Below are positions 14,462 to 25,000 of a stretch of 64,000 nt of DNA, piece after piece. How positions within the stretch are numbered: the stretch's first letter is position 1; each line of letters opens with the position of its first letter. Origin of the DNA: Blepharisma stoltei ATCC 30299 (lineage: Eukaryota > Protista > Ciliophora); NCBI GenBank assembly GCA_965603825.1, contig CBFDEM010000039.1, forward strand, positions 186,001 to 250,000. Reading direction: 5' to 3'. The notes below the pieces were generated by a model. The model was given only the letters and a program-made list of their open reading frames with translations. It had not been told where the DNA came from and did no database searches. A program made the translations under genes and the position numbers.

Positions 14462-15412
14462 ATGGAAACTGAATCTCCCCATGAAGAATTTAAAGTAAAG
14501 CGTAAAAGGTCGCTTCAATCCCCAGATTTAGCATCTCCCATCAGCCATTGCATATGTGTCACCTCTCCAGAAGGCAAAACCATAATAAATCCTCGCTATG
14601 AAATCCTCAGCACAATATACGACCAGCCTGCATCTCCTTCTAGGATTCTCCTAGTAAAAGATACAGAAACCGACGCAATCTTGATTTTAAAGCAGCTTTT
14701 AAAGTGCAAAATCCTTTCCCATGCCCAAAATATATCAGCGCTCCGAGAAATCGAAATCCATCAATCCATCCGACACCTAAACATCGTCACATTTTACGAC
14801 TCAGGAGAAACTGAAGACGCCTATAACCTTTTGCTTGAATATCTACCTGGCTACCTTTATTTTACTGACAGAATTGAGGTAAATAACAAGCCTTTTAACT
14901 TAAAACCTGATGGAGGAGTCCAAAAATTGAAAAGTTTTTCTTATGATGTCATACAGGGCTTAGAATATTTGCATTCACAAGGAATAATCCATTTGGACTT
15001 AAAGCCAGGAAACCTTTTATTGTATACAGACGTAGATGAAGATGAGTATCCTTTAGTGAAAATTTGTGATTTTGGGCTTAGTAGGAAAGTAGATGAAACT
15101 GGATATGCTTTGATAGAAAAAAAATGTGGGACTGATAAGTATGTTCCGCCTGAAGTTAATGATGGGGCAAGGATTTCGCCTGCTGCGGATATGTGGAGCT
15201 TAGGGCTACTTTTGCATAATTTAGCTGTCGGGTATACACCACATGCAATGAAGTGAACACCGGGGCAACCGATTCCATTTCATAAAAGACATTGGCCGAA
15301 GTATGAAGGGACTGGGCTGAAAGAATTTATAGAAGCGTGCTTAAGGTTGAAACCTGAAGAACGAATCACTTCGAGGGATGCACTATTGCATCCCTGGCTT
15401 AGTTTTAACTAG
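14462..15412 (+). CDS. Ser/Thr protein kinase with atypical N-lobe (316 aa)
   Basis: ILKQ, REIEIH, HLDLKPGN, ICDFG, YVPPE, DMWSLG; past TGA 15254 continues to subdomain XI (LKPEERITSRDALLHPWL) and TAG 15410-15412. Confidence 0.9.
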
Positions 15413-16334: not shown

Positions 16335-16632
16335 TTATTTCTTCCACATTCAAAAAGAAATAATTGATAACTTTCTGAGAATTCCCGTATAGAGGATGAT
16401 AAAAAAATCAAAAAACAAGATTTTAAATAATTTTCGCTATTAATTGATGAATAGGCATAGAGATATATTTTTTGTTAGTAAAAAGTACTTAATTAGATTA
16501 ATAAGTGCAATGCAAATTTTTCCAGAATCTTCTACTTAAAATTAATTTTTGAAATTTTATTCGTAAAATAATTGATGCAAAAACTCCCATTATTTTTTAA
16601 AAACATCATAAGTTAAGTAGCATAAAAATTAT

Positions 16633-18276
16633 TTACGAAATCTGGATAATATTGAATGCTGTCGTTTCAGTGTCAAATGTGTCTCTTGTGCCTCCTACAT
16701 ATACAACTGTATCTCCGCGCTCTACCAAATTTACTTCTTTCGCTTTGTCAATAGCTCTACATAAACATTACATTTCAATCAGTGGTTTCTGAGGATCTTC
16801 CACCATAGACGGATAAACTCCTCTTACCGCCTTCAAAAACCTAGTGGTTTTTGGCGAATTCGTCAGTGCCAAAATCAAGCAAGGCGGCATAAACCTTGAT
16901 ATCTGTTGTGCAGTTCTCCCAGACCTCGTCTGACAAATAATAATTTTCCCCTTCAACGCCAGCACACTCCTCACTGCACAATAGCAGACATTTTCCGCAA
17001 TCGTAATACTGCTTTGTATAGTCTCTAAAATTTTTTCACACTGAAAATTATAGTCAAGGTACTTTTCAGCTTCCAGACAAATTTGTTCACAAGTCTGTAA
17101 AGCTAATACTGGATGATCGCCATATGCTGTCTCACCAGTCAGCAATAAGGCATCACATCCATCTAAAATTGCATTCGAAATATCGGTGACTTCTGCACTA
17201 GATGGATGCTTTTGATGTACCATAGTTTCTAATAGCTGCGTCGAGATGATGACTGGCTTAGACAGTTCATTGCATCTTTTTACTATTTCTTTTTGAATTG
17301 TACATACGTCAGCTAAACTTGTCTCTAAGGCTAACATCCCTCTTCCTATCATAACTCCGTCACATGCCTGTATGAGAGCTTCTGAGTTTTGGGCAGCACA
17401 TGAGTTTTGGATCCCTATGAATTTTTTTACGTTAGGCAGAGGAATGTTGTGGAAATCGTGCAGGTCTTCTTCGTCTCTTAGCTGCTTGTAGACGATGAAA
17501 TCTATATCGTTATCACATGCCCATCTAATGTCAGCGAAATCGTAAATATCATTCGCACAGCTTATTGGTGGCTTTTTGGAGCCGGAGGGACGGATGTGGC
17601 AAGGCTTGTGCTCACTGAGGACACAGTCGTGGTCAACCCGACAGCAGACGATTTTTTCTTTTCTTTGGGATTTGGGGATGTGAGGAGTTAGACGTCTAGG
17701 TCGGCGAATAATGTTTAAAGAGTCAGATTTATAGAGCTTTGGACGATCAGTTGAGCTTGATCTCTCTTCAAAGGATTTTACCTGTGGGACATGATGAGAA
17801 GTGCCTCCGTTGTGAGAAATTTGTAGAGAGGAAGGAAATTTTGGCTTGTTAGTATTCTGAATTGACTCTACTGTAAAAACAATTTTTCCAAAATCAATTA
17901 AAAGCTTGTCTCCAGGGTCGACGAGGTTAGGGAACTCTTTATTGTTGCAATGGATTATGTTCTCTCCTTTAATTTCTAGTAAATTCGAGCTATAAATCCT
18001 TACAAAATCGCCTTTTCTGAGTTTAAGGGAAATACTAGAGTTAAAGTTTCCAAGTCTTAAGTCGCTTTCTCTGAGCCCTAGCATAACGCCTACGTGTTTT
18101 CCTGTTTCTTTCATCGCGTCCCTTAGATTGTTTAAGACAGTTTGCTTGTCAATTTCGAGGAATCTATCACTGATCCTAGCAATGTCCATTCCCGCATTAA
18201 TGAGATCAATAATCACTTCTTTGCTTGAAGAGGCTTTTCCTAGAGTGCAAGCGATCTTTGTTTTTCTTAGAGGCAT
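16633..18276 (-). CDS. Pyruvate kinase-like protein, predicted catalytically inactive (542 aa; one 15-nt intron)
   Basis: RKTKIACTLG, AGMDIAR, PGDKLLIDFG, KPVIISTQLLETM, DISNAILDGCDALLLTGETAYG, TRSGRTA. Splicing 16757-16771 adds the C-terminal ...GDTVVYVGG... Confidence 0.9.
16757..16771 (-). other. 15-nt spliceosomal intron GTAATGTTTATGTAG
   Basis: Removal deletes in-frame stops and restores the pyruvate-kinase C-domain end. Confidence 0.9.
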
Positions 18277-19046
18277 GATAATATATTATTAAATTTGTTG
18301 ATCTTTATGAACTATTATAATCATTATTCGCCCACAAGTGGAATGATAAAATGGCTTTTATCCATATTAATCTTCTTTCCATCTATGAGCAATTATTTTA
18401 GGAAGGGTTGAATTTGTGTGATAAGTAGGCAAATAGCCAAAGTAGCTAAAATATTAGCAGCAAAATCACTGATAAATTTATCAATTTATAAAATATTCAA
18501 AAAACAACAAAAAACAGTTTAAAATTGCTTATAAAAGAAAATTATTTATAAGTGCTTTTTTCATGAGGCACTCGAAAAGATAAAATCTAGGCAAGATTAC
18601 AAATCATAATAGGCAGTGCTAGATACTTGCATTAATCTTTATCACTGTTCTTTTAAATACAAATTCTTCGATATTGTTCTATAAATATTAAAGCGAATAA
18701 ATTTTAATTATGCAAAACATTTTAATTTAATTTTACATTATATATAATATATGCAAATTATTATATTTTAACCACAAAAATTGTCAGGAATTAAATTAAT
18801 CGGAAAATGAGTTATCACGTATAGAAATCCAGCAGTTTTGGTTATTGTATCAAAAATTGCTATAATAATTTTTCACGCAATCTAAATTAAAATTTTAATT
18901 GGAAAGTTAATTCTTTAGCACGAATAACTAAATTTTCTGATATTTCAAATTAATTCTAGCTCCTTTGATTTTTCAAAAACCTTATGCAACTACTCCATGT
19001 TATAAATTGAGGTAAAAATATTTGAGAGGCTTATTCTATTATACCA

Positions 19047-22000
19047 ATGTCATTGAATTCCAACCTAAATCAAGAAAACAAAAATATTGAAAACTGAAGA
19101 AATATTCACTTACTTGGCAGCTCCAAAAGTCCTAACAAAGGCTACCCAAAAAACCTAGTAATGACATCACGATACACTTTATGAAATTTCTTCCCTAAAA
19201 ATATATCCGAGCAATTTCAAAATTATGCCTATTACCTATATCTCATAGATCCAATTTCTGAATTAATCAAAAATCCATACTCCTGAGATTGAACTTCAGC
19301 ATTTCCTATAGTCTTTTTAATAATTTTAACTTGTATCTTTGATGCTTGCAGAGATGTGAAAAATCATAAAAATGATAAATCGGTGAATGATAAATTGTTC
19401 GAAATATGAGATGGATTTCAATTCGTGCCAACAAAAAGCAAGAATATTTGCGTGGGAGATATTATTTTACTAAATGAAAATGATTATGCCCCAGCAGATG
19501 TTCTTATTATTTGTATCGGAGAAGAAGAAAAAGTCTGTTATATTGATAGGGCTGGGATAATCGGAGGCACAGACATTAAAGTAAAAAAGCCTATAAAAGA
19601 TACTCAGAGATTATTTGATACAGATGATATTGAAGAAGCTTCTGCCATTTTAAATAGAATTAATGCGAAAATCAAGATCCCAGACTCTTCTTCAAATGAT
19701 ATTTGCGGAACTTTTAAAATGAGTATAAACCCTAGTCAAACAGAAATAAATCCAGACAATTTTATACAGCAATGGTCGCATATTATAGAGACATCCTGAA
19801 TTTTAGGGGTTGTGATATATACAGGCTATGAAACTTCTGTATCAATTTCAATAAAAAACCGGGCAAATATTTCCAATACAGAAAAACAGTTAAATATATG
19901 AGTTTTATGGATTGGGAGTTTTTATTTTTGCATGGTTTTGATATCATTTTTAGTTAATTTTCTTGCTTATGGGACAAAATATGGAGACAATGCGTTATCA
20001 CTATTTATGACTATTGCGTTTAATTTAAACAAGCATGTGCCTATATTTTTATTCCTAATTTTGCCTATAATTCGGCTTGTCCAAATTTGAAGAATTTCGA
20101 AATATTATAAAGGAGTTACCTTTCATTCTAGTAAAGTTAATGAAGATCTAGGACAAGTCGAGTACATTTTGACTGATAGATCTGGGACTATTACAAAAAA
20201 TAAATTGATTATATCATCATGTATGGTTAATGGCATAGCTTATGCTAATATTGAAGAACAGTATGATAACTCTCCGGAACTTAAAACTGAAAATTCGCCC
20301 TTCAGGACTGTTGATCCGAATGAAGCTCAAGTCAATAATTGAATATCAAGCGAAAGTCAGTCTTTTGACGCTTTAAAGCATGAGCTAATTCATTCGTGTA
20401 ATAGAGGGAATGTTTATAACTTTATCTTATGTATGGCAATATGCAATCAATTTTTCCCCAAAATGTCTGGAAAATGCATATCAATATCTGCAGACGACAG
20501 AACCTTTGTAGAAACAGCTGGACAGCTAGGTATCCAACTCGTAAATCGAACCAATAAATCTTGCATAGTGAACATTCTAGGAGATATATTTGAATTTTCT
20601 GTTATTGCTTATCGGCCATTTTCATCTAAAAGCAAAAAAAATCGCATCATAGTCTACGATAATTCGTCAAACCAAACCATTTTATTCGTGAAAGGAGCAA
20701 AAGACTCCATGAACGAATTATTTGATTTAACAAATGAAGAGAGGCTGAATTTTGAAGAAAATTTATATTCTTGTAACCTTCTAGGCAAAAGATTGATTTT
20801 TATGGGCTATAAAGTCCTCAGTGATAAAGACTACAAGCACTTTCATTTTGGCTATAAAAACGCAAAACGTTCCCCAGTAAACAGTGAAGGCAGAATAGAA
20901 AGCATTTTTGAAGCACTTGAACAGAAATTAAAATTTTTAGGCTGTGTCGCAATTGAGGATAAAGTTTCGAAGCGAACACGAGAAGCAGTAACACTCCTGA
21001 GTCAAGCGGGCATTAAATTTTGACTTATGAGTGGAGAAGATGAAGAAATTACTTTGACGACTGCTATTTCTGCAAATATGTTTGATTTGCATACATCGAT
21101 AGCTAGGCTAAAGTCATATTCTTCTCAGCTGGAATGCACCATGGATATGATTAAAATTGTAAAAAGACATATAATACATAGTGGAGAAGAAAACCTTGAC
21201 ACAAACCTCCTTCAGACTTCACGTGAATACAATAACAGACCCTCAAACACTTCGCAGAATTGTCTGAATTTCCCAAAGATATCAGAAGTAGATCATAATT
21301 GGACACCAAAATTATCTGAAATTATTGAGCGAAAAAACTCATTAAAAGAAAAATCTACCAATATTCATCCATTTTTAGCAAAAATTACTACAATAAACAT
21401 GTCTGCTCCGCTATCATCAAAATTCAATGCGGATACTGTTTATTTTGTGCTATCTATTGATGCACGAGGTATTAGTTATGAGCTTAGCTGTGAAGAAAAT
21501 AGAAAATTATTCTGTGCTATGCTTAGTGCAGCCCATTGTGTGTGTTTTCATTCACTATTACCAAGAGATAAAAGGCAAATTGCCTCGCTACTTAGGAACA
21601 ATTTTTCTTATAATCCAACTTTTTTAGCTATAGGAGATGGAGCTGGCGACGTAGGAATGATAAAGCAGGCTCATGTAGGCGTAGGGATTATTGGCAAAAG
21701 AGGAAATTTTGCAGCAGATGCTGGGCATATTGCAGTCAGAGATTTCTCACAAATAAAAAACTTGATTTTATTTGAAGGACATTGGAATTATGTCAATGTC
21801 TCAAATATTATTTTAATTTATTTGTTTGGGAGTTTTATGCATACTTGGATAATTTTTTGCTATACTTGTGTAAAAAACACTGGTGGGATTTCAATTTTTA
21901 GCATTGGAATGTCATGATACTATTATGGATTTCTAACAGCAATTCCTTTAATTATAATTGGGATTTTTGATGAAGACGTAAAAGGCCGACAAATAGCAAA

Positions 22001-25000
22001 ATTCCCTGAAATGCATAATGTTGGGCTTTACAAGCTGATGTTTATAAGTAAAAGACTGTGAATTGTGGCTATGAAAGCTCTTGCTCAAGGAATATTAATT
22101 TTTTTCTTTGTATTTTATTGTGGAATATTAAATGATAATGGGTATACAGAGAACAGTGCATATATGTCTATAGTTATGTATATATCACTATACAGCTCAT
22201 TTCTTATTTATTTGATTCTTGAAACGTATTCTTATAATGTTTATACTATTTCAAGCTATGTGTTTTCGCTGATATCTTTGATAGTGTTTTTAGAAATCAT
22301 GTCTGAGGCTCCTAATTCTCATATGAATGGAGACTTAGAGATGACGTATATTTCTCCACTTATGTACTGCCATATGATATTTTTACCATTGATTTGCTTG
22401 ATAATTAATTATGCAATTAAATGCTGCGAAGTTCTTTTTTACCCGAGTTTTATTGATTTTATCAGGAATAAGTTCGCTGGGAAACTGTATTATGAAGCCA
22501 AGTCAAGAATTGCTACGTTTAATGAAAAACTTGATAAGATTTATAAAGATAGCAAAGCATTTAGAAAATCTAAAGAAAGCACTGAATTTACCATAAATAA
22601 ATGGACTTGAAAATTTTTAAGCCCGTCAACAGAAATTGATTATCAAAATGAAAAAATAAATGAATATTTAGGTCCATATCGAGCATTTGCTATTTATAGA
22701 TGTGCTATAATTTTGTGCATTTTTATTTATGTTTGGAATGTTGATATTAGTGAAAAAGCTATTCCTCCATTTTATACAGCTTGCTCTGCTGTTTATGGGA
22801 TTTTTGCAATCCTCTCTTTCATACCATATTTTAAGTATAAAAGAAATATGGTTACAATGCTAATGAATATCTATGATATCATTATGATAATAGTCCATTC
22901 ATTTATTTTTGATTTCCAGATTCCTGCAATTTACTTAAGCTGGCCTCCTTTAATTTTAATAGGCTCATGTATGGACTGAATTTATGGTGTTTTGTTTTCA
23001 CTGATTATATCTTCCTGTGTATGTGTCTCAGCCTATCTTAATTCTTCTTATTTATCTACAATTGAATGTTACATTTCAGGAACTGAGTTTACAGTCATTT
23101 ATTTCGCAATTTGAATTTCCTCTGCTATAATAGGCTATAGCATTGAAAAATACGACAGAGAAAAATTTATTTTACTTAAAAAGGTCGAAAATGAAGTCGA
23201 AAAATCCAAACAAGTTTTAGACTGCGTTTTGCCTGAATTTGTTCGAAAAAGGGTTAAGGACGGGGCACGATATATTGCTGATGACCAAGGAATAGCAACT
23301 GTGCTGTTTTGTGACATACATAATTTCGAAGATATCGTAGAAGCATATCCTTTGCATGAACTTATCGCATTTTTAGATAATGTTTATAGGCAATTTGATA
23401 ATTTATGCGAATTAGTTGGGGTAACAAAAATAGAAACAGTAGGGAAAACTTATATGGCTTGTGCTGGCATTAAAGACAGTGAAGCTGAATTAGATGGAGT
23501 TTTCCAATCAGTCCCACATGGACGGAGAGCTATTGAGATGGGTATGGCAGTTTTAAAAACTGCAGAAAAAATCAAGCTAAAAAATGGAGGCAATTTACAA
23601 GTAAAAATTGGAATTCATAGCGGCCCAGTAACAGCTGGAGTTGTTGGATACCACAAGCCTCAGTTTTCTCTTGTAGGAGATACAGTAAATACTGCTAGCA
23701 GAATGTCCTCAACCAATCAAGAACCAAACACTATTCAGATATCGGAAGAAACTTATAATAATAACATTGGTGATAAGGATGATTTTATTTTTACAGAACT
23801 TCAGGTCGAAGCAAAAGGAAAAGGCTCTATAAAGGCTTTTAAAGTTGAAGAAAAAGATATTGGAGATAGAGATTCGCCATTGTCCCCTATTATTGAGTTC
23901 GATATACAAACAGATTTTCTTTTAGCAAGATCCAGCCCAATTCGGAATACAAGAAAAAGGACAGCAATTGATTATGCGTGGAGTCCTGAAAGAAGACAGT
24001 CAGTCGTAAGCTCGCCAGATTCAAAAAGACACTCAACTGTGGTAGATGAAAGGAGAAAATCAATCGCAAATGTAGCGGGGTTTAAAAGCCTTCCAATTCC
24101 TTTACCTGTTGCTGCAGATGGGAGAAGGCAATCGATTGTGATGACTTCAAGTGGAAGAGGGTCTATAATAAATCCAGCAGAGAGAAGACAGTCTGTTGTC
24201 AATCCAGATATGAGGAGACAGTCAATCATGGTAAGCTTAGGTGTCAGTGATAAAGCCCAGCTATTTAAAAGGCAGGATACTGATAAAATAGACCCCATTA
24301 AGTTTCATCCATTTTCTTGCTCTGAGACTGACCAAGAGAAAAACTTAAGGTTATATTTTTTGGAGCATAATCAATGAATATTGAAAATCAGAATTCTAAC
24401 AATAATTTTTTGTGGGTTATTTTTAGGTGTAATGAAAATCATTCTTATAACGCTCGTTGAAGCCAAAACATATAATATTATATCAACTATTTATTTTTTG
24501 TCTTCCATTATTTGATATATTTTGCTTTGGAAAACTTTTACTAAGATAAAAAAGTCAAAGTATATTCCATGGGTTATGCAATGTGGCTATCTTATCCCAT
24601 TTATTTTATTCCTTATCATTGAAATTAATCACAATTCTGAAATAAAAATTGTAGAAGAAGCATATCTCCTATTTTGCACATTGCTATCATCTCAATGCAT
24701 TTCTTCATTCTTTAAGCATACTATAAGCACCACAATTGTTTCAGCATTTTTGATAGTATTGGATCTTGCGATTTTAAATGATAAAGATGAAAAGTACATA
24801 TATTTGATATCCATTATATCATTCGAACTTTTCATGATTTCAATATCATATTTTTTAGAAAAAGCATTAAGATTCAATTATGCTTTAGAAGATTTAGCCA
24901 AAAAAGAACTTGAAAAGACAGAAAACCTCTTAAAACAAATGATGCCACCTCACGTTTATCGAAACCTCAAAGAAGATACAACAATAACTGATTCCTTAAC

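Follow-up and report, generated by a model that had tools for sequence, protein, structure and literature searches.

An intact, transcribed pyruvate kinase-like gene of heterotrich ciliates with a rewritten and predicted non-catalytic active site

The 64,000-nt window analyzed here, from Blepharisma stoltei, carries on its reverse strand a two-exon gene with the fold of pyruvate kinase (PK), whose ORF is intact and encodes 542 aa (16633-18276, Table 1). NCBI names this gene pyk, and its spliced translation is identical to the 542-aa database model, referred to below as P0001. Transcript contigs from four runs (X1 to X4) cover the locus; we regard these runs as RNA on the basis of the missing intron and the gene-length contigs, the RNA label itself being a tool's guess. 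The contigs of X1, X3 and X4 are 1628-1655 nt long and end at the gene borders, and X2 covers the gene piecewise. The 15-nt intron is the sole gap in the contigs and is spliced out in all four runs, and the UTRs deduced from the same contigs measure about 6-17 nt on the 5′ side and at most 24 nt on the 3′ side. The genomic neighbors are a protein kinase and pieces of a P4-ATPase, with no functional link seen.

Table 1. Features of the PK-like gene (positions in the window; residues of P0001; PK residues in human numbering unless stated)
Feature	Position	Strand	Remark
Outermost extent of transcript contigs	16609..18293	-	four runs
Whole coding region, PK-fold gene	16633..18276	-	542 aa, P0001, annotated pyk
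Exon 1	16772..18276	-	501 codons + 2 nt
RISDRFL, residues 34-40	18157..18177	-	for R-x-N-x-S-H-G; Arg73 kept, Asn75 to Ser, Ser77 to Arg, His78 to Phe
GLRESDLR, residues 67-74	18055..18078	-	for D-T-K-G-P-E-I-R; Asp113 to Gly, Arg120 kept
B-domain insert, residues 144-202	17671..17847	-	about 59 residues, predicted disordered, Ser-rich, basic end motif RRPRRLTPHIPK
Variant transcript contig stretch, run X2	17548..17680	-	six differences, all synonymous third-position transitions
YKQ, residues 263-265	17482..17490	-	clade-conserved Lys264/Gln265 at rabbit S242/F243 (human S243/F244)
IGIQN, residues 287-291	17404..17418	-	for S-K-I-E-N; catalytic Lys270 to Gly288, Mg ligand Glu272 to Gln290
GRGMLA, residues 311-316	17329..17346	-	for A-R-G-D-L-G; Mg ligand Asp296 to Met314, clade-variable position
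STQLLETM, residues 345-352	17221..17244	-	T-Q-x-L-E-S-M motif retained; T346 = Thr328
PSSAE, residues 358-362	17191..17205	-	for P-T-R-A-E; Arg lost
TGETAYG, residues 380-386	17119..17139	-	G-E-T-A motif retained
QTRSGRTA, residues 449-456	16909..16932	-	C-domain T-x-S-G-x-T-A phosphate-binding loop, retained
Intron, GT..AG, GTAATGTTTATGTAG	16757..16771	-	15 nt; missing in transcript contigs of 4/4 runs
Exon 2	16633..16756	-	1 nt + 40 codons + TAA stop

A preliminary description of the locus had proposed a full-length, intron-containing and uninterrupted PK-fold gene, and gene model, domains and fold all agree with it. Pfam searches detect the PK barrel (PF00224, 5e-58) and PK_C (PF02887, 1e-14), the best solved relatives are PKs (1e-55), and the AF2 model (pLDDT 84, pTM 0.80) matches solved PKs with TM scores of 0.7-0.85. 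All three domains (barrel, B and C) are kept, and domain and family profile searches recognized no enzyme motif in P0001 other than that of PK. Against NCBIfam TIGR01064, however, which has a cut-off of 306.4 bits, P0001 barely passes with 313.7 bits, compared with 540.9 bits for the canonical PK of the same genome (P0133), and its paralogue P0037 fails with 283.4 bits. Over the aligned stretch, the C domain is eight residues shorter than that of PKM (query fragment 35-127 vs. 101 PKM residues) and can be aligned end to end with that of Plasmodium PK. The effector loop, which had been reported as kept, is present only in the form of the T-x-S-G-x-T-A loop, a generic element common to all PKs.

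Each motif quoted in that description, from RISDRFL through QTRSGRTA, is found in P0001 as stated, and the structural motifs that it listed as remaining are present as STQLLETM and TGETAYG. Residue alignment further shows that the equivalents of Lys270, Glu272, Asp296, Asn75, His78 and Asp113 are truly replaced, and do not merely appear so through alignment shifts. Relative to rabbit muscle PK (1a49/1pkn, human numbers in parentheses), G288 corresponds to K269 (K270), Q290 to E271 (E272), M314 to D295 (D296) and T346 to T327 (T328); in the N-terminal motifs, R34 corresponds to R73, which is kept, S36 to N75, R38 to S77, F39 to H78 and G67 to D113. The catalytic Lys is a Gly in P0001, as in 43 of the 44 full-length members of the clade described below. 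Of the two Mg2+-ligand positions, Gln290 is invariant in the clade and that of Met314 is variable (M/T/S/V/I/N/A/G). The K+ site, for which we assume the residue roles given in the established PK structural literature, has lost all four of its residues, with Asn75, Ser77, Asp113 and Thr114 replaced by Ser36, Arg38, Gly67 and Leu68. The PEP contacts Arg34, Gly313 and Thr346 (equivalent to Arg73, Gly295 and Thr328) are invariant across the clade, and the equivalents of Arg294-Gly295 and of Arg120 are likewise kept in P0001. Only P0001 and the two members nearest to it have lost the Arg of P-T-R-A-E; most of the clade has P-[ST]-R-[SA]-E. With the catalytic Lys, the two Mg ligands and the K+ site all gone, we infer that P0001 lacks pyruvate-kinase catalysis; the earlier designation as a non-catalytic PK paralogue is thus well supported as regards the replacements, the catalytic loss itself being predicted from them.

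The same substitutions occur in 51 protein clusters, which score 445-826 bits, the next score being 314 bits, and a profile search with the clade alignment returned the same 51 clusters, with no additional or remoter members. We refer to P0001-P0052 without P0048 as the heterotrich PK-like clade. Its named members come only from B. stoltei (four genes, including P0001) and Stentor coeruleus (at least two genes, with the proteins SteCoe_5472 and SteCoe_31461), and all 44 full-length members, the Stentor proteins among them, carry the substitutions. Contigs encoding the environmental members resemble compact eukaryotic DNA. The clade is monophyletic (SH-aLRT 99) with P0001 inside, and branches outside the canonical PK clade of alveolates on a stem with a length of 1.5 changes per site, which is long; its relation to bacterial and eukaryotic PKs appears as a polytomy on that stem. 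It comprises two subfamilies, each containing both Blepharisma and Stentor, which indicates that the family is older than the split between these genera. It is an old family, seen so far, among named members, only in heterotrich ciliates. P0001 matches the clade profile with 776 bits, against at most 314 for canonical PKs, and bears the whole clade signature, composed of R-[IL]-[ST]-x-R-F, [GS]-L-R-E-S-D-[IM]-R, G-[ILV]-Q, G-R-G-x-L-A and a B-domain insert ending in R-x-[KR]-R..P-K. The clade consensus begins eight residues ahead of R-K-T-K-I and has no N-terminal extension of the eukaryotic PK type; its A and C domains share 0.31-0.36 and 0.26 identity, respectively, with those of canonical eukaryotic PKs.

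We then compared the clade, with conservation counted over its 44 full-length members, with 81 canonical PKs. Of the 76 columns that are at least 90% invariant in the latter, 43 are kept in the clade, 18, including the D296 position, are variable, and 15 hold another residue that is itself conserved in the clade, almost all of these columns lying in the catalytic motifs. R-I-S-x-R-F, L-R-E-S-D-x-R, G-x-Q and the new Lys at S243 are near-invariant replacements, bringing new cationic side chains into the cleft (Arg at S77, Arg at K115 and Lys at S243). The insert is conserved within the clade as well, in the form of K/R-x-x-S-[FLY]-N and R-P-K-R..P-K. Domain by domain, identity within the clade comes near to that among canonical eukaryotic PKs, at 0.61 vs. 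0.66 for A1, 0.43 vs. 0.50 for the B core and 0.42 vs. 0.44 for the C domain.

The gene is single-copy in the genome. The probability that all six differences of the X2 variant would be synonymous by chance is about 0.0013. For the paralogues C52 and C54, pN is 0.126 and pS 0.708; P0001 and its nearest paralogue, C25, differ with a pN of 0.275 and a pS of 0.78, which is saturated and hence gives no dN/dS ratio, and since dS is saturated in all paralogue pairs, omega values are rough. The paralogue had been described as maintained, with absence of expression and a dN/dS near 1 named as the marks of a decaying copy; instead, the gene yields a spliced transcript, its variant is synonymous only, and pN lies far below pS in the paralogue pairs. 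P0001 therefore has the attributes of a PK-fold pseudoenzyme, namely homology to PK with the essential residues gone, in a gene that is intact, transcribed and under purifying selection.

We consider it probable that P0001 is an expressed and selected PK-fold protein that is catalytically dead, and whose metal-free pocket still binds an anionic ligand. That the dead site is rewritten and strictly conserved favors ligand binding over a purely structural role, and may be the signature of a retained ligand-binding function. In this model, the metal-dependent phosphoryl-transfer cleft would have become a metal-free pocket, in which a ligand such as PEP, another phospho- or carboxy-metabolite or a nucleotide would be bound without turnover. 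The new Arg and Lys residues would compensate charge in the cleft, as judged from the sequence and from known PK structures rather than from model coordinates. The protein could thereby act as a reporter or buffer of metabolic state, or its docking of partners could depend on the ligand, and the disordered, Ser-rich, basic insert that the B domain places over the cleft probably serves for docking or for regulation by phosphorylation. The analysis shows the fold, the substitutions and their conservation, transcription with splicing, and purifying selection; inactivity, binding of a ligand and a function in sensing or regulation are inferences. Glycolysis does not depend on this gene, given that a fully canonical PK (C11, P0133) is encoded in the same genome. 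Two features speak against the ligand-binding model, the conserved Lys264 on a neighboring strand and the new Glu70/Asp72, from which a different type of catalytic or metal site might conceivably be rebuilt.

Another explanation is a neofunctionalized enzyme, whose rewritten cleft would catalyze another reaction on a PEP- or pyruvate-like substrate. The near-invariance of the replacements, with no drift, the new polar or charged R38, E70, D72, K264 and Q290 lining the old active site, and the retained equivalents of Arg73 and Thr328 would all suit it. To our knowledge, however, every characterized member of the PEP/pyruvate TIM-barrel superfamily depends on a divalent metal bound by acidic residues, while in the clade a Gln has taken the place of one metal ligand and the second ligand position is free to vary (M/T/S/V/I/N/A/G); as no enzyme motif besides that of PK is recognized either, we hold this explanation to be improbable. 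The supposition that P0001 is still an active PK, drawing its catalytic residues from shifted positions, e.g., Lys264 in place of Lys270, can appeal to the presence of this conserved Lys on the adjacent strand and to the TIGR01064 score just above the cut-off, but it would have to accommodate the joint loss of both Mg and all four K+ ligands, an unconstrained Asp296 position, the far higher score of the canonical PK and the failure of P0037 on the same model, and it is very hard to credit. Finally, loss of catalytic residues, taken alone, would also suit a decaying or neutrally drifting duplicate, a possibility to which we give practically no weight: it is ruled out by the intact ORF, the splicing, the synonymous-only variant, a pN far below pS and the 51 clusters that share the motifs, with Blepharisma and Stentor proteins in both subfamilies.

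There are two further explanations. P0001 might be a regulatory or structural subunit that enters hetero-tetramers with the canonical PK and tunes its activity or allostery, an option that the preliminary description had named next to metabolite sensor and scaffold. This would agree with the conservation in the clade of the fold in its entirety, C domain and terminal strand included, and with the presence of a canonical PK gene in the same genome. This too we find improbable, since the clade is without the N-terminal extension seen in eukaryotic PKs, has low identity to canonical ones in both the C and A domains, and, in P0001 and its closest relatives, has lost the P-T-R-A-E Arg, presumably an A-A interface residue; moreover, self-association fits four paralogues in two old subfamilies at least as well. 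Alternatively, P0001 could serve the ciliary or cortical apparatus as a structural or docking protein, a role for which its enzymatic ancestry would be irrelevant. Tetrahymena cilia contain canonical PK, in a manner dependent on the C1b/C1f projection (PMC8175508), a cyclophilin-PK fusion is encoded in the B. stoltei genome, the insert has a basic motif, and the family is known only from heterotrichs, which bear elaborate cortical structures. An invariant rewritten cleft would nevertheless be unexpected in a pure scaffold, and neither SteCoe_5472 nor SteCoe_31461 appears in the part of a Stentor proteome supplement that was searched, in which two other PK-domain proteins are listed; we judge this role to be still more improbable.

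Returning to the ligand-binding pseudoenzyme, a bolder and, in our view, rather unlikely extension is that heterotrichs evolved dedicated metal-free metabolite receptors on the PK fold, in which Arg and Lys side chains would stand in for the catalytic Lys and for the K+ and Mg2+ ions, the ligand, PEP or some similar phospho-metabolite, would be bound and not turned over, and the phosphorylatable basic insert would couple occupancy to signaling or to cortical or ciliary docking. If so, and together with a second degenerate pair of genes described below, Blepharisma would have six non-enzymes among its eight PK-fold genes; in six of these eight genes of the B. stoltei genome, the catalytic set is indeed incomplete or missing. 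P0001 bears a pyk, or pyruvate kinase, label and exceeds the TIGR01064 cut-off by only 7 bits, and this annotation, combined with the marginal score, implies that metabolic reconstructions will over-count PK genes in Blepharisma and Stentor. Glycolytic enzymes have given rise to pseudoenzymes in other known cases, but we are aware of a mechanism for almost none of these; in the heterotrich family, the dead site has been rewritten into a new set of conserved residues and not merely degraded. Both subfamilies are represented in Stentor, in which RNAi is reportedly feasible (PMC4019465), so that these ideas can be tested there.

The literature searched (PK pseudoenzymes, Stentor, Blepharisma and SteCoe identifiers) contains no description of the heterotrich PK-like family, in line with the initial statement that no such protein was known from ciliates, although PK-like pseudoenzymes had already been predicted in Drosophila (PMC11836677). 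With canonical PKs (EC 2.7.1.40; rabbit and human PKM, Plasmodium falciparum PK 7z4r/6ksh and P0133), P0001 shares the three-domain fold at about 24-28% identity, together with Arg73, Arg120, Arg294-Gly295, Thr328 and the G-E-T-A, T-Q-x-L-E-S-M and T-x-S-G-x-T-A motifs; unlike them, P0001 and its clade have the Lys, Mg ligands and K+ cage replaced, an insert of about 59 residues and no N-terminal extension. Within B. stoltei, a second degenerate pair of genes with PK barrel and PK_C domains (G000 C53 and C43; L003, L004) resembles P0001 in its damaged catalytic set but keeps the Lys and Glu of K-I-E, has lost Asp296 and Thr328, lacks the B-domain insert, and lies on a separate and very long branch (4.1) outside the heterotrich PK-like clade. 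The cyclophilin-PK fusion (G000 C35) is another non-standard PK-fold gene, but, unlike P0001, its PK part has a full set of catalytic motifs and falls among the canonical PKs of ciliates. The nearest precedent that we found comes from Drosophila, whose "Pyruvate kinase-like" (Pykl) paralogues have been classed in silico as predicted pseudoenzymes because residues critical for the active site or for substrate binding are lost; functionally uncharacterized, they exist alongside one canonical PK, and most of the non-canonical fly paralogues are testis-restricted (PMC11836677). P0001 is likewise a PK paralogue predicted to be inactive in a genome that encodes a canonical PK. In contrast with Pykl, the heterotrich replacements are conserved over 44 full-length sequences in a family that predates the divergence of Blepharisma and Stentor, and, as its named members are all ciliate, an origin independent of Drosophila Pykl is implied.

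We searched with either exon 1 or the stored model of P0001, the database protein equal to the gene product, and compared the exon join with P0001 locally. The window is part of contig C39 of the Blepharisma stoltei assembly (41.5 Mb, 64 contigs), and the 542-aa protein is labelled "pyk" in its B. stoltei database entry. It contains a pyruvate kinase (PK) barrel (PF00224, 5e-58) followed by a PK C-terminal domain (PF02887, 1e-14), and solved PK structures match it at 1e-55. Its AF2 model is confident and PK-like (pLDDT 84, pTM 0.80), reaching TM 0.7-0.85 against solved PKs, and the ESM Atlas's own model concurs. Predicted disorder is limited to residues 144-202, an insert within the B (lid) domain. 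Nearby lie a protein-kinase ORF at 14462-15253 (+; PF00069, 2e-42) and, at 20433-22607 (+), several ORFs that each hold part of a phospholipid-translocating P-type ATPase; no link between these neighbours and the P0001 gene is evident in the window.

Gene model of P0001 (window positions) and active-site residues aligned to rabbit and human PK
Feature	Position	Strand	Rabbit muscle PK	Human PKM2	Remark
P0001 gene, two exons	16633-18276	-			translation identical to P0001
Exon 1	16772-18276	-
Intron, 15 nt, GTAATGTTTATGTAG	16757-16771	-
Exon 2, TAA at end	16633-16756	-
Gly288			K269	K270	canonical catalytic Lys; by alignment
Gln290			E271	E272	canonical Mg ligand; by alignment
Met314			D295	D296	canonical Mg ligand; by alignment
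Thr346			T327	T328	kept; by alignment
Lys264/Gln265			S242/F243	S243/F244	new conserved Lys and Gln; by alignment

Residues were mapped using rabbit muscle PK (1a49/1pkn), in which the chain index equals the classical numbering. At the N terminus, R-I-S-D-R-F-L of P0001 aligns on the canonical R-x-N-x-S-H-G and G-L-R-E-S-D-L-R on D-T-K-G-P-E-I-R, so that Arg73 and Arg120 are retained. His78 is replaced by Phe, and all of Asn75, Ser77, Asp113 and Thr114, which we take from the established structural literature on PK to be K+ ligands, are replaced, by Ser, Arg, Gly and Leu, respectively. The motifs cited in the preliminary description, which had called the gene an intact PK pseudoenzyme, were all found exactly as cited, and alignment to 1a49/1pkn showed that the catalytic residues are truly replaced, with no alignment shift.

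A word search with exon 1 matched 52 proteins at E values from 0 to 1e-78, followed after a sharp drop by canonical PKs at 1e-56. A profile built from 44 full-length members of this clade recovered 51 of the 52 clusters at 445-826 bits, and the same search gave no match above 314 bits beyond those 51. Organism-labelled members come only from B. stoltei, with four genes (on C39, encoding P0001, and on C25, C52 and C54), and from Stentor coeruleus (SteCoe_5472 and SteCoe_31461); metagenomes, Logan assemblies and one MMETSP transcriptome supply the remainder. A maximum likelihood phylogeny of 55 rows recovers the clade as monophyletic (SH-aLRT 99), its long stem (1.5 changes per site) forming a polytomy with bacterial and eukaryotic PKs, and divides it into two subfamilies that each contain Blepharisma and Stentor proteins, indicating that the clade and its first duplication are older than the split between these genera. 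The 15-nt intron is unique to the C39 copy; the ORFs of the C52, C54 and C25 paralogues (L005, L007 and L008) are uninterrupted through the C terminus, with an in-frame TGA in each of C52 and C54, consistent with UGA encoding Trp in Blepharisma. On a 133-kb metagenomic ciliate-like contig, an enolase gene is found 0.7 kb downstream of P0035, a member of the clade, and in the same orientation (L013:3001-6706); this is a single case, and the window lacks such an arrangement.

Contigs of 1628-1655 nt from three sequencing runs (X1, X3 and X4) span only 16613-18293, their ends leaving room for UTRs between a few and about 20 nt long, and contigs of a fourth run of the same study (X2) span this stretch in shorter pieces. 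In all four runs exactly 15 nt are missing at 16757, with no other gap. The RNA nature of these runs is the tool's guess, and we read the contigs as transcripts because the intron is missing and they are gene-length. The absence of a further gap places the B-domain insert in the mRNA and rules it out as an unspliced intron. A 133-nt variant contig from X2 (17548-17680) carries six differences (G>A or C>T on the + strand), all third-position synonymous transitions, for which chance gives ~0.0013 given a synonymous fraction of 33% among transitions in this stretch; since the gene is single-copy in the genome, the variant is probably an allele. Among paralogues, pN and pS are 0.126 and 0.708 for C52 versus C54, and 0.275 and a saturated 0.78 for the P0001 gene versus C25. 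Mean pairwise identities in the clade versus canonical eukaryotic PKs are 0.61 versus 0.66 for the first A-domain segment, 0.43 versus 0.50 for the B core and 0.42 versus 0.44 for the C domain, near enough to mark all three domains as constrained; the second A segment is less conserved (0.55 versus 0.74).

We then scored in the clade the 76 columns that are each at least 90% invariant among 81 canonical PKs. Of these, 43 are retained, 18 are variable (including N75, D113, P53 and D296, the last being M/T/S/V/I/N/A/G), and 15 have switched to a different amino acid with a conservation of at least 80% within the clade, among them S77R, H78F, G116E, P117S, D178F, S243K, F244Q, K270G, E272Q, A293G, G298A and A327S. 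Nearly all switched columns fall in the catalytic motifs. A drifting dead site would not show such conserved switches; the pocket has been rewritten and then frozen under a new constraint. Four acidic residues (D113, D178, E272 and D296) and the catalytic Lys have been removed from the cleft, and Arg38, Lys264 and Glu70 gained, changes that would roughly offset the lost charges of K+ and Mg2+, suggesting, from sequence, that the cleft still binds an anionic ligand without metals. We consider it rather likely that P0001 is a non-catalytic PK-fold protein still holding an anionic metabolite in a metal-free cleft, and that it functions in sensing, in regulation or in docking that depends on the ligand.

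Judged by its aligned residues, P0001 is a PK homologue failing the defining catalytic features of the enzyme, and it is very improbable that it remains an active PK. The gene is used and under selection, and that it is a decaying copy is hardly credible. The idea of a maintained non-catalytic paralogue finds good support in transcription, a synonymous-only variant, pN below pS and pocket replacements conserved in the clade, the loss of catalysis being predicted from sequence.

It is unlikely that P0001 serves as a subunit of a hetero-tetramer with canonical PK, of which B. stoltei has one fully canonical gene (P0133, on C11), and we give no better chance to an enzyme of new chemistry in the rewritten pocket. 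A ciliary or cortical scaffold is more doubtful still; in its favor are the presence of PK in Tetrahymena cilia (PMC8175508) and a cyclophilin-PK fusion in B. stoltei (L002:490-2916, on C35), an 809-aa ORF with a cyclophilin domain (PF00160, 3e-25) and all PK catalytic motifs intact. The genome also holds a second degenerate PK-like pair, unrelated to the clade and on a very long branch (4.1), at L003:1480-2928 (C53) and L004:1480-2928 (C43). Each encodes 483 aa, TGA occurring once in frame and being read as Trp, and combines a PK barrel (1e-41) with a PK_C domain (1e-14). K-I-E retains its Lys and Glu, but the equivalents of Asp296 and Thr328 are lost (ARYPMG, SGHVLGSL).

Returning to the metabolite-binding protein favored here, its B-domain insert varies across the clade in length and sequence (identity 0.24) and contains two recurrent motifs: a basophilic-kinase-like K/R-x-x-S-[FLY]-N (K-S-D-S-L-N in P0001), and a basic R-[PFY]-[KR]-R..P-K immediately ahead of the strand leading back into the B domain (R-R-P-R-R-L-T-P-H-I-P-K in P0001). 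A role of the insert in regulatory phosphorylation or docking is plausible. The C-domain T-x-S-G-x-T-A loop, described earlier as a kept effector loop, is indeed present; across the clade its Thr is conserved at 84% and its Gly at 98%. However, it is common to all PKs, and the C domain of P0001, which aligns end to end with that of Plasmodium PK, is 8 residues shorter than that of PKM over the aligned stretch (93 versus 101 residues), so the loop gives no indication of which effector, if any, binds.

The "pyk" label arises because P0001 narrowly passes the NCBIfam model TIGR01064 (313.7 bits, only 7 above the cut-off of 306.4); canonical P0133 scores 540.9, and the paralogue P0037, at 283.4, falls below. 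TIGR01064 is thus an annotation trap, by which a probable non-enzyme is named as the enzyme. Our literature searches found neither a ciliate PK-like pseudoenzyme nor a mechanism for one, in line with the earlier statement that none had been described in ciliates. As a kind, PK-like pseudoenzymes are already known, having been predicted in Drosophila (PMC11836677).
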